Assembly (NCBI GenBank): GCA_002269645.1
Contig: NIVC01001970.1
Coordinates: 1 to 64,000 of the forward strand
Origin: Macrostomum lignano
Taxonomy: Eukaryota
Length of the DNA stretch: 64,000 nt
Direction: 5' to 3'
The notes under the pieces were generated by a model, which ran no database searches, was not told the origin of the DNA, and saw nothing but the letters and a program-made list of their open reading frames with translations. Of this stretch, positions 32,392-64,000 are shown piece after piece; the first letter of the stretch is position 1; every line of letters begins with the position of its first letter. The position numbers and the translations under genes are program-made.

Positions 32392-32395
32392 CAAC

Positions 32396-35722: not shown

Positions 35723-35742
35723 ATACGCATAAGCAAGCAAAC

Positions 35743-38816: not shown

Positions 38817-38819
<3 letters not shown>

Positions 38820-38847
<28 letters not shown>
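38820..38847. repeat. (GA)n microsatellite
   Basis: Directly visible. Confidence 0.9.
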
Positions 38848-38854
<7 letters not shown>

Positions 38855-39913: not shown

Positions 39914-40199
39914 TCGTAGAGTCTTAATTTTTAGCATTTTTATAAAAGTGTACAGACTATATTTAAAAGGGAACAAAGTCTGCAGCATTTGCTTTTTCGC
40001 AGTGGTCCTAGTGATTGCCAATTTTATCAGTATTCTAGACCTACCTACAAAGCACCAACAAAACTGAAAATCTTCCATAGGCATGAAGGCTTTAGAATAG
40101 AAAATATTGGGGGTATGGGAGCCCACATTCTTCACCATAGACAAGTTTTATCAAGGATTCATCACAACTCGATTCAATGACCTCCTTCGACCTCCTTAG

Positions 40200-41055
40200 C
40201 TCCTCAGCTTAAACACAATTTGACTTGATTTGCCAAACTCAGTTCAGCTTGACCATGAATAGAGCTGATGCATTTGTGTGTGACATGGCCAAAGCAGGTT
40301 ATGCAATGAAGGAAATCAAGGAGGCCCTGTACAAAGCCCACAAAGTCGGAGAGACAGATCTGCCGCCTAATTTGACAGGTGAAAGAGGGAGTTGGCACCA
40401 AAGGCCAGCGGAAGTTCAACCCGAAGAAGACCAAACGCTCGGTCAGACAATCACTCCTGTTCAGACAGCAGTGGAGTCGAGCCGTCGTGTAAAAATGGAG
40501 GAATTGGCAGCCGAATTCAGCCTCTCTGTCAGACCTGTCCACTTGATTGTCCACGAAGATCTTGACCTGGCCAAGCAGCAACGGTTTTCCATTGGGATAA
40601 TGTCCGTCGATGATTAGGTCCGTTCAACAGAAAGCGTGAGGAATTTTCTGGAGAGATACTTGATCCATGTACTTCCTCATCCGCTGTACTTGCCAGATTT
40701 GGCTCCCGGATACTTCTGGCTCTTTCGTAAAGCAAAACAAGAGTTATCGGTCATCCAGCTTGCTGACAACTCAGTCAGTAACGAGTTGGAACGGGTTATG
40801 CGAGGTCTCCCAGCAGAAGCATTTGTTCTGGATTCAAGGATACTGGAGGCAGATTCAAGGATACTGGAGGCAGATTCAAGGATACTGAAGGCAGATTCAA
40901 GGATACTGGAAGCAGATTCAAGGATACTGGAGGCAGATTCAAGGATACTGAAGGCAGATTCAAGGATACTGGAAGCAGATTCAAGGATACTGAAGGCACA
41001 TTCAAGGATCAAAGAGGCAGATTCAATGCTAAGGGAGCAAAGGGATATGAGTTAA
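40200..41055 (+). mobile_element. Degenerate, internally deleted mariner (Tc1/mariner) transposase
   Basis: HTH remnant SSRRVKMEELAAEFSLSVRPVHLIVHEDLDL and catalytic C-terminal remnant LPHPLYLPDLAPGYFWLF (cf. mariner HPPYSPDLAP.D(F/Y).LF). The central DD region is missing; TIRs were not identified. Confidence 0.75.
40829..41025. repeat. 21-bp minisatellite (GATTCAAGGATACTGGAGGCA)n, ~9 copies, within the mariner relic
   Basis: Direct tandem periodicity. Confidence 0.9.
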
Positions 41056-41547
41056 AAAGAGTAAAATTCCAAAAATTTTCAAGTTAAGAACTTCACGTCG
41101 TTTAATGGGCTCAATAGGGGCTTTATATTTATTAAAAATAAAGTCACACAGGTTAAGCTGGCATTCTAGATTCTGGCGCCAAAGGCATAACTTTGATAAA
41201 TTTGCTATCAAGTAACTAAATACGAAAAAGCTGAAGAGAGAAATATGTTATTAGAAAAAGCACGAATAAGTTTTTGTTATAAGTAGAGGGTGAAAAAGAT
41301 CGGGGCACACGAGGGCGAATGTTAGACTTAATCATTTATAATCAAAATCACTCTATAGATTAGCAAGTTATTAAAAACTTTTGCTCAGGTAGCCAAAAAT
41401 TTAATTTAGTCAATATTCAAAATAAAAAGCAGTATAGCTGCTAATAATACAATTCTGTTTACTTCTTCGTTGGTTATTGATATTGTCGCAGGCCCTGTTT
41501 CATAGATTCTACAGTTTTTATCAATTTTGTTTTACTTTCGGGATTGC

Positions 41548-41553
41548 TTTATT
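41548..41553 (-). promoter_or_regulatory. Candidate polyadenylation signal of the right giant reading frame
   Basis: AATAAA on the minus strand ~420 nt after the stop at 41971-41973. Confidence 0.3.
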
Positions 41554-41589
41554 CAATCAACGATTTCGTCATTTAACTTTTTCGGAAAA

Positions 41590-41795
41590 GCTTGTCACTT
41601 GTCAGGGCTTGTCACTTGGGGGCTTGTCACTTGTCAGGGCTTGTCACTTGTCAGGGCTTGTCACTTGTCAAGGCTTGTCACTTGTCAGGGCTTGTCACTT
41701 GTCAGGACTGGTCACTTGTCAGGACTGGTCACTTGTCAGGGCTTGTCACTTGTCAGGGCTTGTCACTTGTCAGGGCTTGTCACTTGTCAGGGCTT
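41590..41795. repeat. 17-bp minisatellite (CTTGTCACTTGTCAGGG)n, ~12 copies
   Basis: Direct tandem periodicity. Confidence 0.9.
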
Positions 41796-41970
41796 AAAAT
41801 AATCAATTTTAACCTAACTGTTTCATCTCTAGCAGCACTGCGGCAGAAAAGAAATATTAGTGCAGACAGATAAGCGTTCAAGATTATCGGGTTACCAGAT
41901 ATTCGATCCAAGTGCTGAATAAAGCTACAAAAATATAATACAATGTTCGCAAATGATTGATCATATCGAA

Positions 41971-44900
41971 TTAGTCAAATCCTTCGAAAACACCATCGTC
42001 GCTGCGCAAATCCAGCTGTGAACCACGCGGAGTCCGGCTCCAGGTCAACCTGGCAGTAATTGGCACACCCAGCTGGGTCCGAGCACTGCTGCCGGAGTCA
42101 GTCGATCCCAATGCGGTTCTTTCGCGTCTTGTTACACCCAGCTGGGCCCGGGCACTGCTGACGGAGTCGGTTGATTCCAATGCAGTTCCTTCGCGCCTTG
42201 TTACACCCAGCTGGGTCCGAGCACTGCTGACGGAGTCGGTCGATTCCAATGAAGTTCCTTCACGCCTTGTTACACCCAGCTGTGCCCGGGCACTGCTGAC
42301 GGAGTCAGTCGATCCCAATGCGGTTCCTTCGCGCCTTGTTACACCCAGCTGTGCCCGGGCACTGCTGACGGAGTCGGTCGATCCCAATGCGGTTCCTTCG
42401 CGCCTTGTTACACCTAGCTGGGTGCGAGCACTGCTGACGGAATCAGTCGGTCCCAATGCCGTTCGTTCATGCCTTGTTACACCCAGCTGGGCCCGGGCAC
42501 TGCTGACGGAGTCGGTCGATTCCAATGCAGTTCCTTCACGCCTTGTTACACCCAGCTGGGCCCGGGCACTGCTGACGGAGTCGGTCGATTCCAATGAAGT
42601 TCCTTCACGCCTTGTTACACCCAGCTGTGCCCGGGCACTGCTGACGGAGTCAGTCGATCCCAATGCGGTTCCTTCGCGCCTTGTTACACCCAGCTGTGCC
42701 CGGGCACTGCTGACGGAGTCAGTCGATTCCAATGCAGTTCCTTCGCGCCTTGTTACATCCAGCTGGGTGCGAGCACTGCTGGCGGAATCAGTCGGTCCCA
42801 ATGCCGTTCGTTCATGCCTTGTTACACCCAGCTGTGCCCGGGCACTGCTGACGGAGTCGGTCGATTCCAATTCAGTTCCTTCGCGCCTTGTTACACCCAG
42901 CTGGGTCCGAGCACTGCTGACGGAGTCAGTCGATCCCAATGCGCTTCGTTCGCGTCTTGTTACGCTGGCTTCTAGACGGGCGTGCGGCGCTGACACAGTC
43001 TCCGGCTTAACTGACACTAAAATACTGTTTAACTGCACCTCGTAGCAACAGCCGCTACTCGAAACGAACGAAGCCGACTCATTTGGGACAATTGAGGCGT
43101 CGAATTTCAGTATGGCGGCACGAAACTCCTTGGACTCCTCGATGCAGGCATGGGTGCTGCAAATTTCCTTAGCAGCAAAACTCTCCCAGTGGCTTCCAGA
43201 AGATCTTATCAAAACCTGATCCTGCTTTTTTACGCTAGCACTTCCGGTTTTGAACAACCAAAACGATCCGCTGTTCTTTGAGAGCACTCTATAGTTAGCC
43301 TTAACAATGGCTTCTTCAGTGATAGCTCGGACAGAAACATAACTATCCCGAACAGGGACCTCTAAAGCCGCTTCGCAAAATCCAAATTTGTTGCTATTAC
43401 AACAGCGAATACCAGCGTCGGAGGTAAAGGATTCTTTGTGACAACCCGTGGCACGCAGCTCAGGAAGAGCCTTAACAAAAGATTCCACGTATTTCCTTCC
43501 AAAAACACACGAGCCTTCAACCGATTCAAAACAAAGCGAACCTTCAAATGACACAACTTTTGGTATGTAACAAGCCTTAATTCCATTTCCAATCATAACC
43601 ACTTTCTTCGACATATCGACACACACCGAAGAATTCTTAGCTTTAACTTCTGCTCGAGCCGAGCCATGCTCGAAAGAGAACTCGAGCGAGCTGGCGCATG
43701 CTTCCAATTTCGGCTCGTCCTTGTAGCGTACCGACCCGTCTGATGTAAGCAGCATCTCACAGACGCCCATGTCCTCCACATCCTGTTTCGCTCGAACGGA
43801 GCCGACCATGAAGGATGTCTCAAGGAACGAAGCGCATTCTCTCACTTCAAGCTCTTCCTTGTAGCGTACCGACCCGACTGATGTCTGCAGCATCTCACAG
43901 ACGCCCATGTCCTCCACATCCTGTTTCGCTCGAACGGAGCCGACCATGAAGGATGTCTCAAGGAACGAAGCGCATTCTCTCACTTCTAGCTCTTCTTTGT
44001 AGCGCATTGTCGAGTCCGATGTCTGCAGCATCTCATAGACGCCCATGTCCTCCACATCCTGTTTCGCTCGAACGGAGCCGACCATGACCGAAGTCTCGAG
44101 GAAGGATGCGCACTCTCTTACTTCAAGCTCTTCCTTGTAGCGTACCGACCCGACTGATGTCTGCAGCATCTCACAGACGCCCATGCCCTCCACATCCTGT
44201 TTCGCTCGAACGGAGCCGACCATGAAGGATGTCTCAAGGAACGAAGCGCATTCTCTCACTTCTAGCTCTTCTTTGTAGCGCATTGTCGAGTCCGATGTCT
44301 GCAGCATCTCACAGAAGCCCATGCCGTCTACTTCTTGTTTCGCTCGAACGGAGCCGACCATGACCGAAGTCTCGAGGAAGGATGCGCACTCTCTTACTCC
44401 AAGCTCTTCTTTGTAGCGTACCGACCCGACTGATGTCTGCAGCATCTCACAGACGCCCATGTCCTCCACATCCTGTTTCGCTCGAACGGAGCCGACCATG
44501 AAGGATGTCTCAAGGAACGAAGCGCATTCTCTCACTTCTAGCTCTTCTTTGTAGCGCATTGTCGAGTCCGATGTCTGCAGCATCTCACAGACGCCCATGT
44601 CCTCCACATCCTGTTTCGCTCGAACGGAGCCGACCATGAAGGATGTCTCAAGGAACGAAGCGCATTCTCTCACTTCTAGCTCTTCTTTGTAGCGCATTGT
44701 CGAGTCCGATGTCTGCAGCATCTCACAGACGCCCATGTCCTCCACATCCTGTTTCGCTCGAACGGAGCCGACCATGACCGAAGTCTCGAGGAAGGATGCG
44801 CACTCTCTTACTTCAAGCTCTTCCTTGTAGCGTACCGACCCGACTGATGTCTGCAGCATCTCACAGACGCCCATGTCCTCCACATCCTGTTTCGCTCGAA

Positions 44901-47900
44901 CGGAGCCGACCATGAAGGATGTCTCAAGGAACGAAGCGCATTCTCTCACTTCTAGCTCTTCTTTGTAGCGCATTGTCGAGTCCGATGTCTGCAGCATCTC
45001 ACAGACGCCCATGTCCGTCCTACTTCTGTTTCGCTCGAACGGAGCCGACCATGACCGAAGTCTCGAGGAAGGATGCGCACTCTCTTACTTCAAGCTCTTC
45101 CTTGTAGCGTACCGACCCGACTGATGTCTGCAGCATCTCACAGACGCCCATGTCCTCCACATCCTGTTTCGCTCGAACGGAGCCGACCATGAAGGATGTC
45201 TCAAGGAACGAAGCGCATTCTCTCACTTCTAGCTCTTCTTTGTAGCGCATTGTCGAGTCCGATGTCTGCAGCATCTCACAGAAGCCCATGCTGTCTACTT
45301 CTTGTTTCGCTCGAACGGAGCCGACCATGACCGAAGTCTCGAGGAAGGATGCGCACTCTCTTACTCCAAGCTCTTCCTTGTAGCGTACCGACCCGACTGA
45401 TGTCTGCAGCATCTCACAGACGCCCATGTCCTCCACATCCTGTTTCGCTCGAACGGAGCCGACCATGAAGGATGTCTCAAGGAACGAAGCGCATTCTCTC
45501 ACTTCCAGCTCTTCTTTGTAGCGCATGTCGAGTCCGATGTCTGCAGCATCTCACAGAGCCCATGCCGTCTACTTCTGTTTCGCTCGAACGGAGCCGACCA
45601 TGACCGAAGTCTCGAGGAAGGATGCGCACTCTCTTACTTCAAGCTCTTCCTTGTAGCGTACCGACCCGACTGATGTCTGCAGCATCTCACAGACGCCCAT
45701 GTCCTCCACATCCTGTTTCGCTCGAACGGAGCCGACCATGAAGGATGTCTCAAGGAACGAAGCGCATTCTCTCACTTCTAGCTCTTCTTTGTAGCGCATT
45801 GTCGAGTCCGATGTCTGCAGCATCTCACAGAAGCCCATGCCTCTACTTCTTGTTTCGCTCGAACGGAGCCGACCATGACCGAAGTCTCGAGGAAGGATGC
45901 GCACTCTCTTACTTCAAGCTCTTCCTTGTAGCGTACCGACCCGACTGATGTCTGCAGCATCTCACAGACGCCCATGTCCTCCACATCCTGTTTCGCTCGA
46001 ACGGAGCCGACCATGAAGGATGTCTCAAGGAACGAAGCGCATTCTCTCACTTCTAGCTCTTCTTTGTAGCGCATTGTCGAGTCCGATGTCTGCAGCATCT
46101 CACAGACGCCCATGTCCTCCACATCCTGTTTCGCTCGAACGGAGCCGACCATGAAGGATGTCTCAAGGAACGAAGCGCATTCTCTCACTTCTAGCTCTTC
46201 TTTGTAGCGCATTGTCGAGTCCGATGTCTGCAGCATCTCACAGACGCCCATGTCCTCCACATCCTGTTTCGCTCGAACGGAGCCGACCATGACCGAAGTC
46301 TCGAGGAAGGATGCGCACTCTCTTACTTCAAGCTCTTCCTTGTAGCGTACCGACCCGACTGATGTCTGCAGCATCTCACAGACGCCCATGTCCTCCACAT
46401 CCTGTTTCGCTCGAACGGAGCCGACCATGAAGGATGTCTCAAGGAACGAAGCGCATTCTCTCACTTCAGCTCTTCTTTGTAGCGCATTGTCGAGTCCGAT
46501 GTCTGCAGCATCTCACAGACGCCCATGCCGTCTACATCTGTTTCGCTCGAACGGAGCCGACCATGACCGAAGTCTCGAGGAAGGATGCGCACTCTCTTAC
46601 TTCAAGCTCTTCCTTGTAGCGTACCGACCCGACTGATGTCTGCAGCATCTCACAGACGCCCATGTCCTCCACATCCTGTTTCGCTCGAACGGAGCCGACC
46701 ATGAAGGATGTCTCAAGGAACGAAGCGCATTCTCTCACTTCTAGCTCTTCTTTGTAGCGCATTGTCGAGTCCGATGTCTGCAGCATCTCACAGACGCCCA
46801 TGTCCTCCACATCCTGTTTCGCTCGAACGGAGCCGACCATGACCGAAGTCTCGAGGAAGGATGCGCACTCTCTTACTTCAAGCTCTTCCTTGTAGCGTAC
46901 CGACCCGACTGATGTCTGCAGCATCTCACAGACGCCCATGTCCTCCACATCCTGTTTCGCTCGAACGGAGCCGACCATGAAGGATGTCTCAAGGAACGAA
47001 GCGCATTCTCTCACTTCAGCTCTTCTTTGTAGCGCATTGTCGAGTCCGATGTCTGCAGCATCTCACAGACGCCCATGCCGTCTACTTCTGTTTCGCTCGA
47101 ACGGAGCCGACCATGACCGAAGTCTCGAGGAAGGATGCGCACTCTCTTACTTCAAGCTCTTCCTTGTAGCGTACCGACCCGACTGATGTCTGCAGCATCT
47201 CACAGACGCCCATGTCCTCCACATCCTGTTTCGCTCGAACGGAGCCGACCATGAAGGATGTCTCAAGGAACGAAGCGCATTCTCTCACTTCTAGCTCTTC
47301 TTTGTAGCGCATTGTCGAGTCCGATGTCTGCAGCATCTCACAGACGCCCATGTCCTCCACATCCTGTTTCGCTCGAACGGAGCCGACCATGAAGGATGTC
47401 TCAAGGAACGAAGCGCATTCTCTCACTTCTAGCTCTTCTTTGTAGCGCATTGTCGAGTCCGATGTCTGCAGCATCTCACAGACGCCCATGTCCTCCACAT
47501 CCTGTTTCGCTCGAACGGAGCCGACCATGACCGAAGTCTCGAGGAAGGATGCGCACTCTCTTACTTCAAGCTCTTCCTTGTAGCGTACCGACCCGACTGA
47601 TGTCTGCAGCATCTCACAGACGCCCATGTCCTCCACATCCTGTTTCGCTCGAACGGAGCCGACCATGACCGAAGTCTCGAGGAAGGATGCGCACTCTCTT
47701 ACTTCAAGCTCTTCTTTGTAGCGTACCGACCCGACTGATGTCTGCAGCATCTCACAGACGCCCATGTCCTCCACATCCTGTTTCGCTCGAACGGAGCCGA
47801 CCATGAAGGATGTCTCAAGGAACGAAGCGCATTCTCTCACTTCAGCTCTTCTTTGTAGCGCATTGTCGAGTCCGATGTCTGCAGCATCTCACAGACGCCC

Positions 47901-50900
47901 ATGTCCTCCACATCCTGTTTCGCTCGAACGGAGCCGACCATGACCGAAGTCTCGAGGAAGGATGCGCACTCTCTTACTTCAAGCTCTTCCTTGTAGCGTA
48001 CCGACCCGACTGATGTCTGCAGCATCTCACAGACGCCCATGTCCTCCACATCCTGTTTCGCTCGAACGGAGCCGACCATGAAGGATGTCTCAAGGAACGA
48101 AGCGCATTCTCTCACTTCAGCTCTTCTTTGTAGCGCATTGTCGAGTCCGATGTCTGCAGCATCTCACAGACGCCCATGCCTCACATCTGTTTCGCTCGAA
48201 CGGAGCCGACCATGACCGAAGTCTCAAGGAAGGATGCGCACTCTCTTACTTCAAGCTCTTCCTTGTAGCGTACCGACCCGACTGATGTCTGCAGCATCTC
48301 ACAGACGCCCATGTCCTCCACATCCTGTTTCGCTCGAACGGAGCCGACCATGAAGGATGTCTCAAGGAACGAAGCGCATTCTCTCACTTCTAGCTCTTCT
48401 TTGTAGCGCATTGTCGAGTCCGATGTCTGCAGCATCTCACAGACGCCCATGTCCTCACTTCTGTTTCGCTCGAACGGAGCCGACCATGACGAAGTCTCGA
48501 GGAAGGATGCGCACTCTCTTACTTCAAGCTCTTCCTTGTAGCGTACCGACCCGACTGATGTCTGCAGCATCTCACAGACGCCCATGTCCTCCACATCCTG
48601 TTTCGCTCGAACGGAGCCGACCATGACCGAAGTCTCGAGGAAGGATGCGCACTCTCTTACTTCAAGCTCTTCTTTGTAGCGTACCGACCCGACTGATGTC
48701 TGCAGCATCTCACAGACGCCCATGTCCTCCACATCCTGTTTCGCTCGAACGGAGCCGACCATGAAGGATGTCTCAAGGAACGAAGCGCATTCTCTCACTT
48801 CTAGCTCTTCTTGTAGCGCATTGTCGAGTCCGATGTCTGCAGCATCTCACAGACGCCCATGTCCTCCACATCCTGTTTCGCTCGAACGGAGCCGACCATG
48901 ACCGAAGTCTCGAGGAAGGATGCGCACTCTCTTACTTCAAGCTCTTCCTTGTAGCGTACCGACCCGACTGATGTCTGCAGCATCTCACAGACGCCCATGT
49001 CCTCCACATCCTGTTTCGCTCGAACGGAGCCGACCATGAAGGATGTCTCAAGGAACGAAGCGCATTCTCTCACTTCAGCTCTTCTTTGTAGCGCATTGTC
49101 GAGTCCGATGTCTGCAGCATCTCACAGACGCCCATGTCCTACATCTGTTTCGCTCGAACGGAGCCGACCATGACCGAAGTCTCGAGGAAGGATGCGCACT
49201 CTCTTACTTCAAGCTCTTCCTTGTAGCGTACCGACCCGACTGATGTCTGCAGCATCTCACAGACGCCCATGTCCTCCACATCCTGTTTCGCTCGAACGGA
49301 GCCGACCATGAAGGATGTCTCAAGGAACGAAGCGCATTCTCTCACTTCTAGCTCTTCTTTGTAGCGCATTGTCGAGTCCGATGTCTGCAGCATCTCACAG
49401 ACGCCCATGCCTCACATCCTGTTTCGCTCGAACGGAGCCGACCATGACCGAAGTCTCGAGGAAGGATGCGCACTCTCTTACTTCAAGCTCTTCCTTGTAG
49501 CGTACCGACCCGACTGATGTCTGCAGCATCTCACAGACGCCCATGTCCTCCACATCCTGTTTCGCTCGAACGGAGCCGACCATGAAGGATGTCTCAAGGA
49601 ACGAAGCGCATTCTCTCACTTCTAGCTCTTCTTTGTAGCGCATTGTCGAGTCCGATGTCTGCAGCATCTCACAGACGCCCATGTCCTCCACATCCTGTTT
49701 CGCTCGAACGGAGCCGACCATGACCGAAGTCTCGAGGAAGGATGCGCACTCTCTTACTTCAAGCTCTTCCTTGTAGCGTACCGACCCGACTGATGTCTGC
49801 AGCATCTCACAGACGCCCATGTCCTCCACATCCTGTTTCGCTCGAACGGAGCCGACCATGAAGGATGTCTCAAGGAACGAAGCGCATTCTCTCACTTCTA
49901 GCTCTTCTTTGTAGCGCATTGTCGAGTCCGATGTCTGCAGCATCTCACAGACGCCCATGTCCTCCACATCCTGTTTCGCTCGAACGGAGCCGACCATGAC
50001 CGAAGTCTCGAGGAAGGATGCGCACTCTCTTACTTCAAGCTCTTCCTTGTAGCGTACCGACCCGACTGATGTCTGCAGCATCTCACAGACGCCCATGTCC
50101 TCCACATCCTGTTTCGCTCGAACGGAGCCGACCATGAAGGATGTCTCAAGGAACGAAGCGCATTCTCTCACTTCTAGCTCTTCTTTGTAGCGCATTGTCG
50201 AGTCCGATGTCTGCAGCATCTCACAGACGCCCATGTCCTCCACATCCTGTTTCGCTCGAACGGAGCCGACCATGACCGAAGTCTCGAGGAAGGATGCGCA
50301 CTCTCTTACTTCAAGCTCTTCCTTGTAGCGTACCGACCCGACTGATGTCTGCAGCATCTCACAGACGCCCATGTCCTCCACATCCTGTTTCGCTCGAACG
50401 GAGCCGACCATGACCGAAGTCTCGAGGAAGGATGCGCACTCTCTTACTTCAAGCTCTTCCTTGTAGCGTACCGACCCGACTGATGTCTGCAGCATCTCAC
50501 AGACGCCCATGTCCTCCACATCCTGTTTCGCTCGAACGGAGCCGACCATGAAGGATGTCTCAAGGAACGAAGCGCATTCTCTCACTTCTAGCTCTTCTTT
50601 GTAGCGCATTGTCGAGTCCGATGTCTGCAGCATCTCACAGACGCCCATGTCCTCCACATCCTGTTTCGCTCGAACGGAGCCGACCATGACCGAAGTCTCG
50701 AGGAAGGATGCGCACTCTCTTACTTCAAGCTCTTCCTTGTAGCGTACCGACCCGACTGATGTCTGCAGCATCTCACAGACGCCCATGTCCTCCACATCCT
50801 GTTTCGCTCGAACGGAGCCGACCATGAAGGATGTCTCAAGGAACGAAGCGCATTCTCTCACTTCAGCTCTTCTTTGTAGCGCATTGTCGAGTCCGATGTC

Positions 50901-53900
50901 TGCAGCATCTCACAGACGCCCATGTCCTCCACATCCTGTTTCGCTCGAACGGAGCCGACCATGAAGGATGTCTCAAGGAAGGAGCGCATTCTCTTACTTC
51001 AAGCTCTTCTTGTAGCGCGTCGAGTCCGATGTCTGCAGCATCTCACAGACGCCCATGTCCTCCACATCCTGTTTCGCTCGAACGGAGCCGACCATGAAGG
51101 ATGTCTCAAGGAACGAAGCGCATTCTCTCACTTCTAGCTCTTCTTTGTAGCGCATTGTCGAGTCCGATGTCTGCAGCATCTCACAGACGCCCATGTCCTC
51201 CACATCCTGTTTCGCTCGAACGGAGCCGACCATGACCGAAGTCTCGAGGAAGGATGCGCACTCTCTTACTTCAAGCTCTTCTTGTAGCGTACCGACCCGA
51301 CTGATGTCTGCAGCATCTCACAGACGCCCATGTCCTCCACATCCTGTTTCGCTCGAACGGAGCCGACCATGAAGGATGTCTCAAGGAACGAAGCGCATTC
51401 TCTCACTTCTAGCTCTTCTTTGTAGCGCATTGTCGAGTCCGATGTCTGCAGCATCTCACAGACGCCCATGTCCTCCACATCCTGTTTCGCTCGAACGGAG
51501 CCGACCATGAAGGAGTCTCAAGGAACGAGCGCATTCTCTCACTTCAAGCTCTTCTTTGTAGCGCATTGTCGAGTCCGATGTCTGCAGCATCTCACAGACG
51601 CCCATGTCCTCCACATCCTGTTTCGCTCGAACGGAGCCGACCATGAGAAGTCTCAAGGAACGAGCGCATTCTCTCACTTCAAGCTCTTCTTTGTAGCGCG
51701 TACCGACCGACTGATGTCTGCAGCATCTCACAGACGCCCATGTCCTCCACATCCTGTTTCGCTCGAACGGAGCCGACCATGACCGAAGTCTCGAGGAAGG
51801 ATGCGCACTCTCTTACTTCAAGCTCTTCTTTGTAGCGTACCGACCCGACTGATGTCTGCAGCATCTCACAGACGCCCATGTCCTCCACATCCTGTTTCGC
51901 TCGAACGGAGCCGACCATGAAGGATGTCTCAAGGAACGAAGCGCATTCTCTCACTTCTAGCTCTTCTTTGTAGCGCATTGTCGAGTCCGATGTCTGCAGC
52001 ATCTCACAGACGCCCATGTCCTCCACATCCTGTTTCGCTCGAACGGAGCCGACCATGACCGAAGTCTCGAGGAAGGATGCGCACTCTCTTACTTCAAGCT
52101 CTTCTTGTAGCGTACCGACCCGACTGATGTCTGCAGCATCTCACAGACGCCCATGTCCTCCACATCCTGTTTCGCTCGAACGGAGCCGACCATGAAGGAT
52201 GTCTCAAGGAACGAAGCGCATTCTCTCACTTCTAGCTCTTCTTTGTAGCGCATTGTCGAGTCCGATGTCTGCAGCATCTCACAGACGCCCATGTCCTCCA
52301 CTTCTTGTTTCGCTCGAACGGAGCCGACCATGACCGAAGTCTCAAGGAAGGATGCGCACTCTCTTACTTCAAGCTCTTCCTTGTAGCGTACCGACCCGAC
52401 TGATGTCTGCAGCATCTCACAGACGCCCATGTCCTCCACATCCTGTTTCGCTCGAACGGAGCCGACCATGAAGGATGTCTCAAGGAACGAAGCGCATTCT
52501 CTCACTTCCAGCTCTTCTTTGTAGCGCATTGTCGAGTCCGATGTCTGCAGCATCTCACAGACGCCCATGTCCTCCACATCCTGTTTCGCTCGAACGGAGC
52601 CGACCATGACGAAGTCTCGAGGAAGGATGCGCACTCTCTTACTTCAAGCTCTTCTTGTAGCGTACCGACCCGACTGATGTCTGCAGCATCTCACAGACGC
52701 CCATGTCCTCCACATCCTGTTTCGCTCGAACGGAGCCGACCATGACCGAAGTCTCGAGGAAGGATGCGCACTCTCTTACTTCAAGCTCTTCTTGTAGCGT
52801 ACCGACCCGACTGATGTCTGCAGCATCTCACAGACGCCCATGTCCTCCACATCCTGTTTCGCTCGAACGGAGCCGACCATGAAGGATGTCTCAAGGAACG
52901 AAGCGCATTCTCTCACTTCTAGCTCTTCTTTGTAGCGCATTGTCGAGTCCGATGTCTGCAGCATCTCACAGACGCCCATGTCCTCCACATCCTGTTTCGC
53001 TCGAACGGAGCCGACCATGACCGAAGTCTCGAGGAAGGATGCGCACTCTCTTACTTCAAGCTCTTCCTTGTAGCGTACCGACCCGACTGATGTCTGCAGC
53101 ATCTCACAGACGCCCATGTCCTCCACATCCTGTTTCGCTCGAACGGAGCCGACCATGAAGGATGTCTCAAGGAACGAAGCGCATTCTCTCACTTCTAGCT
53201 CTTCTTTGTAGCGCATTGTCGAGTCCGATGTCTGCAGCATCTCACAGACGCCCATGCCTCACATCCTGTTTCGCTCGAACGGAGCCGACCATGACCGAAG
53301 TCTCGAGGAAGGATGCGCACTCTCTTACTTCAAGCTCTTCCTTGTAGCGTACCGACCCGACTGATGTCTGCAGCATCTCACAGACGCCCATGTCCTCCAC
53401 ATCCTGTTTCGCTCGAACGGAGCCGACCATGAAGGATGTCTCAAGGAACGAAGCGCATTCTCTCACTTCTAGCTCTTCTTTGTAGCGCATTGTCGAGTCC
53501 GATGTCTGCAGCATCTCACAGACGCCCATGCCGTCTACATCTGTTTCGCTCGAACGGAGCCGACCATGACCGAAGTCTCGAGGAAGGATGCGCACTCTCT
53601 TACTTCAAGCTCTTCCTTGTAGCGTACCGACCCGACTGATGTCTGCAGCATCTCACAGACGCCCATGTCCTCCACATCCTGTTTCGCTCGAACGGAGCCG
53701 ACCATGAAGGATGTCTCAAGGAACGAAGCGCATTCTCTCACTTCTAGCTCTTCTTTGTAGCGCATTGTCGAGTCCGATGTCTGCAGCATCTCACAGACGC
53801 CCATGCCTCTACATCTGTTTCGCTCGAACGGAGCCGACCATGACCGAAGTCTCGAGGAAGGATGCGCACTCTCTTACTTCAAGCTCTTCCTTGTAGCGTA

Positions 53901-56900
53901 CCGACCCGACTGATGTCTGCAGCATCTCACAGACGCCCATGTCCTCCACATCCTGTTTCGCTCGAACGGAGCCGACCATGAAGGATGTCTCAAGGAACGA
54001 AGCGCATTCTCTCACTTCTAGCTCTTCTTTGTAGCGCATTGTCGAGTCCGATGTCTGCAGCATCTCACAGACGCCCATGTCCTCCACATCCTGTTTCGCT
54101 CGAACGGAGCCGACCATGACCGAAGTCTCGAGGAAGGATGCGCACTCTCTTACTTCAAGCTCTTCCTTGTAGCGTACCGACCCGACTGATGTCTGCAGCA
54201 TCTCACAGACGCCCATGTCCTCCACATCCTGTTTCGCTCGAACGGAGCCGACCATGAAGGATGTCTCAAGGAACGAAGCGCATTCTCTCACTTCTAGCTC
54301 TTCTTTGTAGCGCATTGTCGAGTCCGATGTCTGCAGCATCTCACAGACGCCCATGTCCTCCACATCCTGTTTCGCTCGAACGGAGCCGACCATGACCGAA
54401 GTCTCGAGGAAGGATGCGCACTCTCTTACTTCAAGCTCTTCCTTGTAGCGTACCGACCCGACTGATGTCTGCAGCATCTCACAGACGCCCATGTCCTCCA
54501 CATCCTGTTTCGCTCGAACGGAGCCGACCATGACCGAAGTCTCAAGGAAGGATGCGCACTCTCTTACTTCAAGCTCTTCTTGTAGCGTACCGACCCGACT
54601 GATGTCTGCAGCATCTCACAGACGCCCATGTCCTCCACATCCTGTTTCGCTCGAACGGAGCCGACCATGAAGGATGTCTCAAGGAACGAAGCGCATTCTC
54701 TCACTTCTAGCTCTTCTTTGTAGCGCATTGTCGAGTCCGATGTCTGCAGCATCTCACAGACGCCCATGTCCTCCACATCCTGTTTCGCTCGAACGGAGCC
54801 GACCATGACCGAAGTCTCGAGGAAGGATGCGCACTCTCTTACTTCAAGCTCTTCTTGTAGCGTACCGACCCGACTGATGTCTGCAGCATCTCACAGACGC
54901 CCATGTCCTCCACATCCTGTTTCGCTCGAACGGAGCCGACCATGAAGGATGTCTCAAGGAACGAAGCGCATTCTCTCACTTCAGCTCTTCTTTGTAGCGC
55001 ATTGTCGAGTCCGATGTCTGCAGCATCTCACAGACGCCCATGTCCTCCACATCCTGTTTCGCTCGAACGGAGCCGACCATGAAGGATGTCTCAAGGAACG
55101 AAGCGCATTCTCTCACTTCTAGCTCTTCTTTGTAGCGCATTGTCGAGTCCGATGTCTGCAGCATCTCACAGACGCCCATGTCCTCCACATCCTGTTTCGC
55201 TCGAACGGAGCCGACCATGAAGGATGTCTCAAGGAACGAAGCGCATTCTCTCACTTCTAGCTCTTCTTTGTAGCGCATTGTCGAGTCCGATGTCTGCAGC
55301 ATCTCACAGACGCCCATGTCCTCCACATCCTGTTTCGCTCGAACGGAGCCGACCATGACCGAAGTCTCGAGGAACGATGCGCACTCTCTTACTTCAGCTC
55401 TTCTTGTAGCGTACCGACCGACTGATGTCTGCAGCATCTCACAGACGCCCATGTCCTCCACATCCTGTTTCGCTCGAACGGAGCCGACCATGAAGGATGT
55501 CTCAAGGAACGAAGCGCATTCTCTCACTTCAGCTCTTCTTTGTAGCGCATTGTCGAGTCCGATGTCTGCAGCATCTCACAGACGCCCATGTCCTCCACAT
55601 CCTGTTTCGCTCGAACGGAGCCGACCATGAAGGATGTCTCAAGGAACGAAGCGCATTCTCTCACTTCTAGCTCTTCTTTGTAGCGCATTGTCGAGTCCGA
55701 TGTCTGCAGCATCTCACAGACGCCCATGCCTCACATCCTGTTTCGCTCGAACGGAGCCGACCATGACCGAAGTCTCGAGGAAGGATGCGCACTCTCTTAC
55801 TTCAAGCTCTTCCTTGTAGCGTACCGACCCGACTGATGTCTGCAGCATCTCACAGACGCCCATGTCCTCCACATCCTGTTTCGCTCGAACGGAGCCGACC
55901 ATGAAGGATGTCTCAAGGAACGAAGCGCATTCTCTCACTTCTAGCTCTTCTTTGTAGCGCATTGTCGAGTCCGATGTCTGCAGCATCTCACAGACGCCCA
56001 TGTCCTCCACATCCTGTTTCGCTCGAACGGAGCCGACCATGACCGAAGTCTCGAGGAAGGATGCGCACTCTCTTACTTCAAGCTCTTCCTTGTAGCGTAC
56101 CGACCGACTGATGTCTGCAGCATCTCACAGACGCCCATGTCCTCCACATCCTGTTTCGCTCGAACGGAGCCGACCATGAAGGATGTCTCAAGGAACGAAG
56201 CGCATTCTCTCACTTCAGCTCTTCTTTGTAGCGCATTGTCGAGTCCGATGTCTGCAGCATCTCACAGACGCCCATGTCCTCCACATCCTGTTTCGCTCGA
56301 ACGGAGCCGACCATGAAGGATGTCTCAAGGAACGAAGCGCATTCTCTCACTTCTAGCTCTTCTTTGTAGCGCATTGTCGAGTCCGATGTCTGCAGCATCT
56401 CACAGACGCCCATGTCCTCCACATCCTGTTTCGCTCGAACGGAGCCGACCATGAAGGATGTCTCAAGGAACGAAGCGCATTCTCTCACTTCTAGCTCTTC
56501 TTTGTAGCGCATTGTCGAGTCCGATGTCTGCAGCATCTCACAGACGCCCATGTCCTCCACATCCTGTTTCGCTCGAACGGAGCCGACCATGAAGGATGTC
56601 TCAAGGAACGAAGCGCATTCTCTCACTTCTAGCTCTTCTTTGTAGCGCATTGTCGAGTCCGATGTCTGCAGCATCTCACAGACGCCCATGTCCTCCACAT
56701 CCTGTTTCGCTCGAACGGAGCCGACCATGACCGAAGTCTCGAGGAAGATGCGCACTCTCTTACTTCAAGCTCTTCCTTGTAGCGTACCGACCCGACTGAT
56801 GTCTGCAGCATCTCACAGACGCCCATGTCCTCCACATCCTGTTTCGCTCGAACGGAGCCGACCATGAAGGATGTCTCAAGGAACGAAGCGCATTCTCTCA

Positions 56901-59900
56901 CTTCAGCTCTTCTTTGTAGCGCATTGTCGAGTCCGATGTCTGCAGCATCTCACAGACGCCCATGTCCTCCACATCCTGTTTCGCTCGAACGGAGCCGACC
57001 ATGAAGGATGTCTCAAGGAACGAAGCGCATTCTCTCACTTCTAGCTCTTCTTTGTAGCGCATTGTCGAGTCCGATGTCTGCAGCATCTCACAGACGCCCA
57101 TGTCCTCCACATCCTGTTTCGCTCGAACGGAGCCGACCATGACCGAAGTCTCGAGGAAGGATGCGCACTCTCTTACTTCAAGCTCTTCCTTGTAGCGTAC
57201 CGACCCGACTGATGTCTGCAGCATCTCACAGACGCCCATGTCCTCCACATCCTGTTTCGCTCGAACGGAGCCGACCATGAAGGATGTCTCAAGGAACGAA
57301 GCGCATTCTCTCACTTCTAGCTCTTCTTTGTAGCGCATTGTCGAGTCCGATGTCTGCAGCATCTCACAGACGCCCATGTCCTCCACATCCTGTTTCGCTC
57401 GAACGGAGCCGACCATGAAGGATGTCTCAAGGAACGAGCGCATTCTCTCACTTCTAGCTCTTCTTGTAGCGCATTGTCGAGTCCGATGTCTGCAGCATCT
57501 CACAGACGCCCATGTCCTCCACATCCTGTTTCGCTCGAACGGAGCCGACCATGAAGGATGTCTCAAGGAACGAAGCGCATTCTCTCACTTCTAGCTCTTC
57601 TTTGTAGCGCATTGTCGAGTCCGATGTCTGCAGCATCTCACAGACGCCCATGTCCTCCACATCCTGTTTCGCTCGAACGGAGCCGACCATGACCGAAGTC
57701 TCGAGGAAGGATGCGCACTCTCTTACTTCAAGCTCTTCTTGTAGCGTACCGACCCGACTGATGTCTGCAGCATCTCACAGACGCCCATGTCCTCCACATC
57801 CTGTTTCGCTCGAACGGAGCCGACCATGAAGGATGTCTCAAGGAACGAAGCGCATTCTCTCACTTCTAGCTCTTCTTTGTAGCGCATTGTCGAGTCCGAT
57901 GTCTGCAGCATCTCACAGACGCCCATGTCCTCCACATCCTGTTTCGCTCGAACGGAGCCGACCATGACCGAAGTCTCGAGGAAGGATGCGCACTCTCTTA
58001 CTTCAAGCTCTTCCTTGTAGCGTACCGACCCGACTGATGTCTGCAGCATCTCACAGACGCCCATGTCCTCCACATCCTGTTTCGCTCGAACGGAGCCGAC
58101 CATGAAGGATGTCTCAAGGAACGAAGCGCATTCTCTCACTTCTAGCTCTTCTTTGTAGCGCATTGTCGAGTCCGATGTCTGCAGCATCTCACAGACGCCC
58201 ATGTCCTCCACATCCTGTTTCGCTCGAACGGAGCCGACCATGAAGGATGTCTCAAGGAACGAAGCGCATTCTCTCACTTCTAGCTCTTCTTTGTAGCGCA
58301 TTGTCGAGTCCGATGTCTGCAGCATCTCACAGACGCCCATGTCCTCCACATCCTGTTTCGCTCGAACGGAGCCGACCATGACCGAAGTCTCGAGGAAGGA
58401 TGCGCACTCTCTTACTTCAAGCTCTTCCTTGTAGCGTACCGACCGACTGATGTCTGCAGCATCTCACAGACGCCCATGTCCTCCACATCCTGTTTCGCTC
58501 GAACGGAGCCGACCATGAAGGATGTCTCAAGGAACGAAGCGCATTCTCTCACTTCAGCTCTTCTTTGTAGCGCATTGTCGAGTCCGATGTCTGCAGCATC
58601 TCACAGACGCCCATGTCCTCCACATCCTGTTTCGCTCGAACGGAGCCGACCATGAAGGATGTCTCAAGGAACGAAGCGCATTCTCTCACTTCTAGCTCTT
58701 CTTTGTAGCGCATTGTCGAGTCCGATGTCTGCAGCATCTCACAGACGCCCATGTCCTCCACATCCTGTTTCGCTCGAACGGAGCCGACCATGAAGGATGT
58801 CTCAAGGAACGAAGCGCATTCTCTCACTTCTAGCTCTTCTTTGTAGCGCATTGTCGAGTCCGATGTCTGCAGCATCTCACAGACGCCCATGTCCGTCCAC
58901 TTCTGTTTCGCTCGAACGGAGCCGACCATGACCGAAGTCTCGAGGAAGGATGCGCACTCTCTTACTTCAAGCTCTTCCTTGTAGCGTACCGACCCGACTG
59001 ATGTCTGCAGCATCTCACAGACGCCCATGTCCTCCACATCCTGTTTCGCTCGAACGGAGCCGACCATGAAGGATGTCTCAAGGAACGAAGCGCATTCTCT
59101 CACTTCTAGCTCTTCTTTGTAGCGCATTGTCGAGTCCGATGTCTGCAGCATCTCACAGACGCCCATGCCGTCTACTTCTTGTTTCGCTCGAACGGAGCCG
59201 ACCATGACCGAAGTCTCGAGGAAGGATGCGCACTCTCTTACTTCAAGCTCTTCCTTGTAGCGTACCGACCCGACTGATGTCTGCAGCATCTCACAGACGC
59301 CCATGTCCTCCACATCCTGTTTCGCTCGAACGGAGCCGACCATGAAGGATGTCTCAAGGAACGAAGCGCATTCTCTCACTTCTAGCTCTTCTTTGTAGCG
59401 CATTGTCGAGTCCGATGTCTGCAGCATCTCACAGACGCCCATGCCGTCTACTTCTTGTTTCGCTCGAACGGAGCCGACCATGACCGAAGTCTCGAGGAAG
59501 GATGCGCACTCTCTTACTTCAAGCTCTTCCTTGTAGCGTACCGACCCGACTGATGTCTGCAGCATCTCACAGACGCCCATGTCCTCCACATCCTGTTTCG
59601 CTCGAACGGAGCCGACCATGAAGGATGTCTCAAGGAACGAAGCGCATTCTCTCACTTCTAGCTCTTCTTTGTAGCGCATTGTCGAGTCCGATGTCTGCAG
59701 CATCTCACAGACGCCCATGCCGTCTACTTCTGTTTCGCTCGAACGGAGCCGACCATGACCGAAGTCTCGAGGAAGGATGCGCACTCTCTTACTTCAAGCT
59801 CTTCCTTGTAGCGTACCGACCCGACTGATGTCTGCAGCATCTCACAGACGCCCATGTCCTCCACATCCTGTTTCGCTCGAACGGAGCCGACCATGAAGGA

Positions 59901-62900
59901 TGTCTCAAGGAACGAAGCGCATTCTCTCACTTCTAGCTCTTCTTTGTAGCGCATTGTCGAGTCCGATGTCTGCAGCATCTCACAGACGCCCATGCCGTCT
60001 ACTTCTGTTTCGCTCGAACGGAGCCGACCATGACCGAAGTCTCGAGGAAGGATGCGCACTCTCTTACTTCAAGCTCTTCCTTGTAGCGTACCGACCCGAC
60101 TGATGTCTGCAGCATCTCACAGACGCCCATGTCCTCCACATCCTGTTTCGCTCGAACGGAGCCGACCATGAAGGATGTCTCAAGGAACGAAGCGCATTCT
60201 CTCACTTCTAGCTCTTCTTTGTAGCGCATTGTCGAGTCCGATGTCTGCAGCATCTCACAGACGCCCATGTCCTCCACATCCTGTTTCGCTCGAACGGAGC
60301 CGACCATGACCGAAGTCTCGAGGAAGGATGCGCACTCTCTTACTTCAAGCTCTTCCTTGTAGCGTACCGACCCGACTGATGTCTGCAGCATCTCACAGAC
60401 GCCCATGTCCTCCACATCCTGTTTCGCTCGAACGGAGCCGACCATGAAGGATGTCTCAAGGAACGAAGCGCATTCTCTCACTTCTAGCTCTTCTTTGTAG
60501 CGCATTGTCGAGTCCGATGTCTGCAGCATCTCACAGACGCCCATGCCGTCTACTTCTTGTTTCGCTCGAACGGAGCCGACCATGACCGAAGTCTCGAGGA
60601 AGGATGCGCACTCTCTTACTTCAAGCTCTTCCTTGTAGCGTACCGACCCGACTGATGTCTGCAGCATCTCACAGACGCCCATGTCCTCCACATCCTGTTT
60701 CGCTCGAACGGAGCCGACCATGAAGGATGTCTCAAGGAACGAAGCGCATTCTCTCACTTCTAGCTCTTCTTTGTAGCGCATTGTCGAGTCCGATGTCTGC
60801 AGCATCTCACAGAAGCCCATGCCGTCTACTTCTTGTTTCGCTCGAACGGAGCCGACCATGACCGAAGTCTCGAGGAAGGATGCGCACTCTCTTACTTCAA
60901 GCTCTTCCTTGTAGCGTACCGACCCGACTGATGTCTGCAGCATCTCACAGACGCCCATGTCCTCCACATCCTGTTTCGCTCGAACGGAGCCGACCATGAA
61001 GGATGTCTCAAGGAACGAAGCGCATTCTCTCACTTCTAGCTCTTCTTTGTAGCGCATTGTCGAGTCCGATGTCTGCAGCATCTCACAGACGCCCATGCCG
61101 TCTACTTCTTGTTTCGCTCGAACGGAGCCGACCATGACCGAAGTCTCGAGGAAGGATGCGCACTCTCTTACTTCAAGCTCTTCCTTGTAGCGTACCGACC
61201 CGACTGATGTCTGCAGCATCTCACAGACGCCCATGTCCTCCACATCCTGTTTCGCTCGAACGGAGCCGACCATGAAGGATGTCTCAAGGAACGAAGCGCA
61301 TTCTCTCACTTCTAGCTCTTCTTTGTAGCGCATTGTCGAGTCCGATGTCTGCAGCATCTCACAGACGCCCATGCCGTCTACTTCTTGTTTCGCTCGAACG
61401 GAGCCGACCATGACCGAAGTCTCGAGGAAGGATGCGCACTCTCTTACTTCAAGCTCTTCCTTGTAGCGTACCGACCCGACTGATGTCTGCAGCATCTCAC
61501 AGACGCCCATGTCCTCCACATCCTGTTTCGCTCGAACGGAGCCGACCATGACCGAAGTCTCGAGGAAGGATGCGCACTCTCTTACTTCAAGCTCTTCCTT
61601 GTAGCGTACCGACCCGACTGATGTCTGCAGCATCTCACAGACGCCCATTCCATCGACTGACTGTTCCACTTGAACTGAAGCCTCCTTCACAAGGGTCTCT
61701 ACTCGGATAGCGCCTTCCAGGAATGTGGTCTCGGAGAATGTGAAGCACTCGTCGAGTTTCGGCTCTTCCTTGTAGCGTACCGACCCGTCTGATGTGAGCA
61801 GCATCTCACAGACGCCCATTCCATCGACTGACTGTTCCACTTGAACTGAAGCCTCCTTCACAAGTGTCTCTACTCGGATAGCGCCTTCCAGGAATGTGGT
61901 CTCGGAGAATGTGAAGCACTCGTCGAGTTTCGGCTCTTCCTTGTTGCGTACCGACCCGTCTGATGTGAGCAGCATCTCACAGACGCCCATTCCATCGACT
62001 GGCTGTTCCACTTGAACTGAAGCCTCCTTCACAAGTGTCTCTACTCGGATAGCGCCTTCCAGGAATGTGGTCTCGGAGAATGTGAAGCACTCGTCGAGTT
62101 TCGGCTCCTCCTTGTAGCGTACCGAAGCGTCTGATGTGAGCAGCATCTCACAGACGCCCATGTCGTCTATTTCTTGTGTCACTCGAACAGATCTTATCAT
62201 GACGGATGTCTCGAGGAACGATGCGCAGTCTCTCACTTCTAGCTCTTCTTTGTAGCGCATTGTCGTGTCTGATGTCTCCAACATCTCACAGAAGCCCATT
62301 TCGTTCACACTCTGGCTTACTCGAATGGACTCACTCAAGACAGTCGTTTCCAGGAATGAGGCGCATTCGTTGAGCTTCGGCTCTTCCTTGTAGCGTACCG
62401 ACCCGACTGATGTCTGCAGCATCTCACAGACGCCCATGTCCTCCACATCCTGTTTCGCTCGAACGGAGCCGACCATGAAGGATGTCTCAAGGAACGAAGC
62501 GCATTCTCTCACTTCTAGCTCTTCTTTGTAGCGCATTGTCGAGTCCGATGTCTGCAGCATCTCACAGACGCCCATGCCGTCTACTTCTTGTTTCGCTCGA
62601 ACGGAGCCGACCATGACCGAAGTCTCGAGGAAGGATGCGCACTCTCTTACTTCAAGCTCTTCCTTGTAGCGTACCGACCCGACTGATGTCTGCAGCATCT
62701 CACAGACGCCCATGTCCTCCACATCCTGTTTCGCTCGAACGGAGCCGACCATGAAGGATGTCTCAAGGAACGAAGCGCATTCTCTCACTTCTAGCTCTTC
62801 TTTGTAGCGCATTGTCGAGTCCGATGTCTGCAGCATCTCACAGAAGCCCATGCCGTCTACTTCTTGTTTCGCTCGAACGGAGCCGACCATGACCGAAGTC

Positions 62901-64000
62901 TCGAGGAAGGATGCGCACTCTCTTACTTCAAGCTCTTCCTTGTAGCGTACCGACCCGACTGATGTCTGCAGCATCTCACAGACGCCCATGTCCTCCACAT
63001 CCTGTTTCGCTCGAACGGAGCCGACCATGAAGGATGTCTCAAGGAACGAAGCGCATTCTCTCACTTCTAGCTCTTCTTTGTAGCGCATTGTCGAGTCCGA
63101 TGTCTGCAGCATCTCACAGACGCCCATGCCGTCTACTTCTTGTTTCGCTCGAACGGAGCCGACCATGACCGAAGTCTCGAGGAAGGATGCGCACTCTCTT
63201 ACTTCAAGCTCTTCCTTGTAGCGTACCGACCCGACTGATGTCTGCAGCATCTCACAGACGCCCATGTCCTCCACATCCTGTTTCGCTCGAACGGAGCCGA
63301 CCATGAAGGATGTCTCAAGGAACGAAGCGCATTCTCTCACTTCTAGCTCTTCTTTGTAGCGCATTGTCGAGTCCGATGTCTGCAGCATCTCACAGACGCC
63401 CATGCCGTCTACTTCTTGTTTCGCTCGAACGGAGCCGACCATGACCGAAGTCTCGAGGAAGGATGCGCACTCTCTTACTTCAAGCTCTTCCTTGTAGCGT
63501 ACCGACCCGACTGATGTCTGCAGCATCTCACAGACGCCCATGTCCTCCACATCCTGTTTCGCTCGAACGGAGCCGACCATGAAGGATGTCTCAAGGAACG
63601 AAGCGCATTCTCTCACTTCTAGCTCTTCTTTGTAGCGCATTGTCGAGTCCGATGTCTGCAGCATCTCACAGACGCCCATGTCCTCCACATCCTGTTTCGC
63701 TCGAACGGAGCCGACCATGACCGAAGTCTCGAGGAAGGATGCGCACTCTCTTACTTCAAGCTCTTCCTTGTAGCGTACCGACCCGACTGATGTCTGCAGC
63801 ATCTCACAGACGCCCATGTCCTCCACATCCTGTTTCGCTCGAACGGAGCCGACCATGAAGGATGTCTCAAGGAACGAAGCGCATTCTCTCACTTCTAGCT
63901 CTTCTTTGTAGCGCATTGTCGAGTCCGATGTCTGCAGCATCTCACAGACGCCCATGCCGTCTACTTCTTGTTTCGCTCGAACGGAGCCGACCATGACCGA
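41971..64000 (-). CDS. 3' part (>22 kb, >7,300 aa) of a second giant repeat-coding exon, paralogous to 4312-28602, ending DDGVFEGFD*; 5' end outside the window
   Basis: Same 46-aa A/B units. Long clean ORFs at both ends (59999-63994 and 41971-45012) with scattered single-base frameshifts between. Unique Cys/Ser/Val-rich region at ~43700-42960, then 23-aa repeats and a stop. Confidence 0.75.
42060..42962 (-). repeat. Coding 69-bp (23-aa) repeat VTRREGTALGSTDSVSSARAQLG x13
   Basis: Period 69 bp (ttgttacaccc at 42129 and 42198); 13 copies counted in the translation. Confidence 0.95.
43700..64000 (-). repeat. Coding 138-bp A/B tandem array, ~140 units in the window
   Basis: Same units as 4560-19270; runs off the window edge. 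Copy number estimated from length. Confidence 0.95.
61645..62390 (-). repeat. Single 46+46+3x57-aa higher-order unit embedded in the right A/B array
   Basis: Contains ETTVLSESIRVSQSVNE, SVMIRSVRVTQEIDD and three ETLVKEASVQVEQ units, with private substitutions relative to the 19.2-26.6 kb block. Confidence 0.9.

Follow-up and report, generated by a model that had tools for sequence, protein, structure and literature searches.

Plakins such as desmoplakin, plectin, envoplakin/periplakin and the invertebrate spectraplakins share an N-terminal plakin domain in which an SH3 domain lies within a spectrin repeat, and in the vertebrate members the C-terminal repeat region is encoded in one very large terminal exon. 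Epiplakin, also a plakin-family gene, has a single exon with many tandem, nucleotide-homogenized copies. The paralogs AHNAK and AHNAK2 are built alike: a small domain at the N-terminus precedes one giant exon made up of short tandem units. Tandem paralogs with internal repeats (spidroins, mucins), together with Lepore-globin-type hybrids, are familiar for concerted evolution and for chimeric genes formed by unequal crossing-over. The locus described here is a 64-kb stretch of Macrostomum lignano DNA (contig NIVC01001970.1, positions 1 to 64,000; hereafter the window) that carries two giant, repeat-bearing genes, one behind the other: a complete plakin-domain gene, G1, and, upstream of it, the 3' part of a second gene that is cut at the window edge.

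G1 resembles the plakins in its N-terminal plakin domain, with the SH3 domain within a spectrin repeat, and has its repeat region in one giant terminal exon, as vertebrate plakins do. It is unlike them in that no plakin-repeat or calponin-homology (CH) domain was detected, in the shortness of its plakin domain (~490 aa) and in its orphan repeat units of 46 or 57 residues. The window genes share with epiplakin the many homogenized copies in one exon, but epiplakin lacks a plakin domain, is built of true plakin-repeat units and is homogenized inside one gene, not between two neighbors; AHNAK and AHNAK2 differ in their unrelated sequences and N-terminal domains, and as paralogs that are not adjacent and whose arrays are not identical. 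Units without fixed differences, diverged flanks and an in-register hybrid unit are shared with the concerted-evolution and chimeric-gene systems, whereas the window stands apart from these in that an array of more than 20 kb appears to have been exchanged onto a foreign C-terminus, in a combination that is polymorphic among recent copies of the locus in one species. Most likely these are two distinct genes in tandem, and in the upstream one recombination would have joined a G1-type array to the tail of a further paralog, G2. This array-tail recombinant, seen relative to three copies of parental type, is the most interesting element of the locus.

All coding sequence of interest is on the minus strand of the window and is given here in forward coordinates. 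Guanine-cytosine (GC) skew is negative throughout 4-28 kb and 42-64 kb, and long open reading frames (ORFs) are found on the minus strand only, at 16414-28674 (4086 aa), 41971-45012 (1013 aa) and 59999-63994 (1331 aa). The two arrays lie head-to-tail, both coding in this direction, just as the first-pass annotation had described them. G1 begins at 37577 and ends at 4312, while the upstream gene is represented by its array (array 2, 43771-64000) and its C-terminus (C-terminus 2, 41971-43632), and a 4.4-kb spacer (37578-41970) separates the two.

Three further copies of the locus are present in the same assembly, Mlig_3_7 (GCA_002269645.1), on NIVC01000828.1 (L001, L006), NIVC01003798.1 (L002) and NIVC01000222.1 (L004, L005), and another contig (L007) begins inside an array. 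All three loci are collinear with the window from 43725 down to 26656, at 93-98% identity, and all three show the same order of C-terminus 2, a spacer of 4.3-6.7 kb and then G1, so that the position of the EGFD-ending tail next to the 5' end of G1 is independently corroborated. The reference copies differ among themselves by a similar amount as they do from the window, a divergence that fits the known redundancy of the M. lignano genome, in which 180 Mb lie in duplicated blocks at least 95% identical (PMC5730564); PMC10468722 also reports hidden polyploidy in this genome. At these three loci the gene ending in EGFD is an old paralog, G2, with its own complete set of plakin exons and its own linker. 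Its plakin exons E1-E7 are 33-79% identical to those of G1 at the amino acid level and occur in the same order, and the encoded proteins match Pfam SH3_10 (8.7e-11). The G2 array consists of alternating 46- and 57-residue units, C and D (MGAFDEVLTADGGMRYKDEPKLEACASSLELEYEAAGIQVKQAVSE / MGSCEQILTADGG...), of which 49, 46 and at least 12 were counted at the three loci, with a length of ~7.5 kb where the array is seen whole. No C/D unit occurs anywhere in the window. With an opposite-strand gene of 312 aa upstream of G2 and a metallophosphoesterase gene after G1, the reference cluster consists of precisely G2 and then G1. One exon of the pair departs from the general level of divergence: G2 exon 2 (L002, 9800-10037) is 91% identical in nucleotides to G1 exon 2 (window 36721-36484), set against 33-60% amino acid identity in the other plakin exons, which suggests local gene conversion between G1 and G2.

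What can be seen of the upstream gene in the window combines a G2 tail with an array of another kind. C-terminus 2, as read from the ORF translation and from Tandem Repeats Finder, comprises ~220 unique residues, thirteen 23-aa (69-bp) repeats at 42065-42963 and a short tail ending in EGFD, with the stop codon at 41971-41973; the exit from the array, beginning EHGSARAEVK and continuing to EGFD and the stop, spans 43671-41971. Its identity to the tails at the three reference loci is 95-97%, and it has 13 copies of the 23-aa repeat to their 9, 7 and 6, differences that mark it as belonging to a distinct copy of the locus and not as a reference tail used again. The first AATAAA past the stop lies 420 nt downstream and is not decisive as a poly(A) signal. 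Array 2, delimited by anchor spacing and unit typing, represents the 3' part of a giant terminal exon. The units were named A, B, a and b (46 aa), P and E (46 aa) and L (57 aa), and array 2 holds at least 147 of them before it is cut at 64000: 142 of ~138 bp and one P-E-L-L-L block at 61649-62437 (46+46+57+57+57 codons), recognized by its typing and its spacing of 138, 138, 171, 171 and 171. Tandem Repeats Finder reports a 138-bp period with 130 copies at 43738-64000, within which a 171-bp period is found at 61591-62161; in G1 it reports the 138-bp period at 4556-19440 (array 1) and alternating 171/138-bp blocks at 19.4-26.6 kb. In kind, the P-E-L-L-L block corresponds to the blocks that G1 has at 26.6-19.4 kb. 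With a length of at least 20.2 kb, as against ~7.5 kb for reference G2 arrays, and with this block inside it, array 2 resembles the G1 array in size and architecture, and not an altered G2 array.

The point at which the two kinds of sequence meet is a single hybrid unit (43633-43770, minus strand), identified by unit alignment and by the start of megablast homology, and translated in frame as MGVCEMLLTSDGSVRYK / DEPKLEACASSLEFSFEHGSARA-EVK. Its 5' 45 nt are of L type, with one private synonymous change, and the remainder is of D type, the type belonging to G2. The breakpoint is at about 43725, within ~20 nt that are common to L and D types (TACAAGGA(A/C)GAGCCGAAA), and megablast homology to L001, L002 and L004 begins at that same base, inside one unit. 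The change from one type to the other is abrupt and preserves both register and frame. Of the nine units adjoining the junction, four carry private substitutions, as expected for a real array end that has been evolving separately.

The units of array 2 match those of array 1. The translated units (MGVCEMLQTSDSTMRYKEELEVRECASFLETSFMVGSVRAKQDVED and MGVCEMLLTSDGSVRYKEEPKLNECFTFSETTFLEGAIRVETLVKEASVQVEQPVDG are examples) are acidic, with a net charge of about -4 to -5 per 46 residues, and have two Cys each. Between A and B, 10 codons differ synonymously and 5 non-synonymously, and this excess of synonymous differences indicates that the arrays are constrained coding sequence. Among 100 indel-free units of array 2, 88 have an exact 138-bp copy in array 1 (4.6-19.4 kb); when only the zones with intact frame are considered, 27 of 33 are 100% identical to a G1 unit. 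No fixed difference between the arrays is found for any unit type, and the longest exact stretch common to both is 1047 bp. The earlier statement that the A/B units are essentially nucleotide-identical to those at 4.6-19.3 kb is borne out by these counts. The exits from the arrays differ as completely as had been reported, BLASTP of C-terminus 1 against C-terminus 2 finding no similarity past the last repeat unit. Array 2 as a collinear duplicate of array 1 was also considered and is ruled out: the best 15-kb alignment between them reaches just 93.9% and is found again at many 276-bp registers, and the strings of unit types differ. The argument against a simple haplotype duplication, which had been drawn from the different ends, holds by way of this lack of collinearity. 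Between copies of the locus the flanks are 2-8% divergent, whereas the arrays show no fixed differences.

This combination most probably arose by non-allelic homologous recombination between an L-type unit in a G1-type array and the last unit of a G2 array. The favored course is that a G2-G1 tandem underwent one unequal crossover; this would give the order G2 - [G1 5' part + array :: G2 tail] - G1 and predicts plakin exons of G1 type beyond 64000; in a less likely variant, the array would have been replaced and expanded inside G2 by conversion. The nucleotide identity of the arrays would then follow from their recent common origin, together with ordinary concerted evolution of tandem units. 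Because the three sister loci keep the arrays of G1 and G2 distinct, the near-identity seen in the window points to recent exchange and not to a stable co-homogenization of old paralogs. The first-pass annotation was correct in seeing tandem paralogs, a relationship supported by the start codon and eight plakin exons that G1 has of its own, by a conserved stretch of 123 nt before that start (see later) and by the separate exons of G2 at the three Mlig_3_7 loci. Its proposal that gene conversion keeps the arrays homogeneous is not supported in that form, since all three reference G2 genes carry the C/D array that is missing from the window.

The expectation of a single giant reading frame through array 2 also fails. 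As given, the array is open at 41971-45012 (1013 aa) and 59999-64000 (at least 1331 aa) only, and in its interior (45013-59998) unit lengths of 133-137 reveal ~39 units with a net frameshift, between 45.0 and 60.1 kb. The interior and 3' part of the A/B array of G1 (4893-16413) hold another ~40 frameshifted units. The indels comprise 141 deletion events and only 8 inserted bases, and are mostly of single bases at ~10 recurrent positions. The types A, B, a and b are not alike at 24 sites, and it is there that 124 of the 125 single-base deletions lie, against an expectation of 25% (p ~1e-72); the base dropped is the variable base itself, as in GAGCT-GAAG (A: CTAGAAG; B: CTTGAAG). Broken units are otherwise intact, with ~1 substitution each. 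Sequencing errors of homopolymer type fit only partially, since the GGG at position 2 and the AAA at position 120 are spared and two-base runs are affected. The placing of the deletions on sites that vary between units points to artifacts of the consensus caller, in which reads of different units were piled together. On this pattern we conclude that the frameshifts are assembly artifacts and not pseudogenization. The consensus in both array interiors is unreliable, and the number and order of units there should not be trusted, while 16414-28674, 41971-45012 and 59999-64000 look reliable. The sequence alone is enough to recognize frame breaks in such arrays as consensus artifacts, and the same test can be reused for other long-read assemblies.

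Several observations weigh against a recombinant upstream gene. Among the proteins and contigs searched, none repeats the junction of an A/B array with C-terminus 2: the 1013-aa ORF had no exact match, and no protein containing C-terminus 2 was retrieved with the junction and tail as query. With the array interiors mis-consensused, part of the identity, length and unit order could have been made by the assembler. The upstream gene begins beyond 64000, and the crossover and conversion variants are indistinguishable within the window. The crossover would need L units interspersed in the A/B part; such units are present at 62.2-61.6 kb and in L005, though not immediately at the junction. Independent transcription of the two genes is presumed.

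An alternative history, which we regard as unlikely, is that the upstream gene is an ordinary, old G2, with divergent plakin exons beyond 64000, whose array has been homogenized with that of G1 by continuing conversion or unequal exchange. Identical units without fixed differences are what such a process would leave, the arrays are 15-24 kb apart in direct orientation, and the similarity of exon 2 already suggests that local conversion occurs between these paralogs. Homogenization is not the normal state of this pair, however, as G2 at each of the three reference loci still has its own C/D array, which extends as far as the tail. Array 2 also exceeds every reference G2 array in length by a factor of more than 2.5, and its G1-type internal architecture, including the P-E-L-L-L block, is more readily explained by the arrival of a whole array than by piecemeal conversion.

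Rather improbable, in our estimation, is a mis-join by the assembler, by which an A/B array from a G1-type gene (e.g., the 55-kb form described below) was placed at 43.8-64 kb on a G2 tail, the true sequence there being a C/D array as elsewhere in Mlig_3_7. The junction is unique to the window, the array interiors show the consensus errors of mixed reads, Mlig_3_7 contigs do break in these arrays (L007 starts in one), and the M. lignano genome is notoriously redundant (PMC5730564). The details of the junction speak against such an event: ~20 nt of homology between otherwise strongly different units is far too short for a long-read overlap, the join is both in register and in frame, and the surrounding 3 kb (41971-45012) form an error-free ORF. 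The private substitutions in the adjoining units and the private synonymous change in the L part of the hybrid unit argue in the same direction, as does a tail that is unlike all three reference tails in its repeat number and sequence.

The possibility that there is one transcription unit, in which shared upstream exons are spliced to one of two mutually exclusive giant terminal exons (that of array 2 or that of G1), had been raised in the first-pass annotation. The 5' part of G1 was resolved by tblastn of an M. lignano protein (P0002), a search for GT-AG junctions and reading of the sequence, and consists of exons 1-8 with their introns at 28688-37577, with exon borders at 37577-37173, 36718-36494, 35889-35743, 34939-34785, 31165-31054, 30952-30802, 29769-29586 and 28811-28688. 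The start codon is the ATG at 37577, all eight small exons have canonical GT-AG borders, and the gene is complete within the window. Together they encode a plakin-type SR-SH3-SR domain of ~490 aa, exon 4 (34939-34785) providing the second half of the SH3 domain (Pfam SH3_10, 1e-10). In a phmmer search with the 500-aa N-terminus of G1, desmoplakin (3r6n, 7.7e-10, residues 99-315) and plectin (3pe0, 3.2e-9) were the best PDB matches. The unique part of the 4086-aa ORF matches two M. lignano proteins at 94% and 72% identity, and both of these contain SH3_10 and have the N-terminus MASLETPDN.

The spacer before this start is collinear with L001, L002 and L004 and contains minisatellites of 17, 21 and 32 bp. 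Its last 123 nt before the ATG (37578-37700, minus strand) are 100% identical in the window, L001 and L004, compared with 90-95% for the rest of the spacer, and are a candidate promoter, 5' untranslated region or trans-splice acceptor region. An acceptor-like cttttccag precedes the ATG by 13 nt, with an open frame running through it. Of M. lignano genes, 38.8% are trans-spliced (PMC5730564), and the motif is compatible with a spliced-leader acceptor.

A single gene with two ends would make use of this acceptor and open frame, both units are on the same strand, and polycistronic precursors exist in M. lignano (PMC5730564). It is nevertheless very improbable that the locus is of this kind. Existing gene models begin at the ATG at 37577, the upstream gene in the reference loci has a full exon set and a stop of its own, and a product spliced into G1 would carry two plakin domains, as G1 already has a complete one; trans-splicing of a spliced leader would explain the acceptor equally well. 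Since G1 and the reference G2 each encode a complete plakin domain, one gene with alternative terminal exons is unlikely, and the proposal is not supported. Least probable of all, to the point of being scarcely credible, is that the frameshifts are genuine and that the two are pseudogene arrays in decay, a reading that has ~80 units out of frame as given on its side and is opposed by the great excess of deletions over insertions, by their falling almost without exception on bases that differ between unit types, by the lack of other decay in the broken units, by the intact ends of each array over 1000-4000 codons and by the excess of synonymous differences between unit types.

The giant terminal exon of G1 (4312-28602), defined from the ORFs, the spacing and typing of units and reading of the sequence, runs for 24.3 kb from 28602 to the stop. 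It begins with a unique linker (28602-26917) and two degenerate units (26916-26608), followed by the L/P/E blocks (26607-19441) and then by array 1, the A/B array (19440-4630), which closes with a last partial unit; 46 L/P/E units are followed by 108 units of A/B type. C-terminus 1, taken from the ORF translation, has 76 aa (4539-4315; RHFVQSELL...VTPFD), with the stop at 4312-4314. Together with its 3' flank it was recovered in Mlig_3_7 in P0009, P0012, L005 and L007, with L005 aligning to window 11055-1, and is corroborated by these sequences.

On NIVC01000222.1 (L004/L005, 31.5-100.6 kb of the record) G1 extends over ~69 kb, with a terminal exon of ~55 kb that would amount to ~18,000 codons if real, and L units are interspersed there among a/b units. 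The annotation of this contig cuts the gene into many small 'genes', and its arrays show the same short-unit (132-137 bp) artifacts.

Repeats and transposon-like remnants are also found between the coding parts. Eight minisatellites fill the G1 introns and the intergenic spacer, several of them inside stretches that can be aligned to Mlig_3_7 loci. Those in the introns are at 28866-29548 (period 22 bp), 29988-30682 (15 bp), 33170-33505 (13 bp), 34949-35174 (19 bp) and 35198-35721 (14 bp), and one of them stops ~10 nt short of the exon 4 acceptor; those in the spacer are at 37734-38509 (32 bp), 40831-41026 (21 bp) and 41590-41795 (17 bp). G1 intron 4 contains an RNase H/reverse transcriptase-like remnant on the plus strand (31656-32012, with ORFs to ~33150; Pfam RNase_H 4.3e-12, RVT_3 2.7e-5), adjoined by a long poly-Q-coding tract at ~32.4-32.5 kb, and this is probably a decayed retrotransposon. 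In the spacer, two ORFs on the plus strand (40225-41055), containing …HVLPHPLYLPDLAPGYFWLFRKAK…, recall the C-terminus of mariner/Tc1-type transposases; Pfam gave no significant hit for them.

The repeat unit itself belongs to no known family, as judged by Pfam scans and by a profile search of 1.84 billion representative proteins. That profile, built from 16 unit variants, retrieved only Macrostomum proteins, apart from two marginal matches that look spurious. Pfam scans of the arrays, both tails, P0006 and P0007 returned no plakin-repeat family, the hits being spurious sums with zero significant stretches, and no CH domain was found in scans of the exons or of P0006, the gene models beginning with MASLETPDN. 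An AlphaFold2 prediction of five consecutive units from a single sequence was uninformative (predicted local distance difference test score, pLDDT, 31.7). Related units of L/P/E type are found behind a different N-terminus in another family member elsewhere in the genome, L003 (NIVC01000392.1, 482-510 kb of the record; protein P0007), where the N-terminal part has weak Pfam hits of coiled-coil type and no SH3_10 hit, and the repeat module accordingly occurs outside plakin-domain genes as well.

The window genes can be placed in a Macrostomum-restricted family of giant plakin-domain proteins that are presumed to be cytoskeletal linkers, in which the plakin N-terminus would dock at junctional or membrane complexes and the acidic, Cys-containing array would form an extended linker or scaffold. 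The family is unannotated and, as far as databases reach, restricted to Macrostomum, and no paper containing both 'Macrostomum lignano' and 'plakin' was found in the library searched. A wider reading, offered tentatively and with somewhat less than even confidence, is that this is a lineage-specific family of giant plakin-domain proteins (~8,000 to perhaps 18,000 or more residues), built from the orphan acidic unit with its two Cys, whose arrays, entire and tens of kilobases long, and tails are shuffled between tandem paralogs by in-register recombination, so that recent copies of the locus in one genome encode different array-tail combinations, a form of 'module swapping' within single exons. 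Should the junction prove real, the locus provides a clean and datable case of a giant repeat protein gaining a new C-terminus or a new array by one recombination, and, with the parental state preserved in three sister copies, it would become possible to measure directly how, and how fast, coding arrays evolve in concert. The locus also draws attention to a family of giant plakin-domain proteins that is unstudied, in a species used as a regeneration model.

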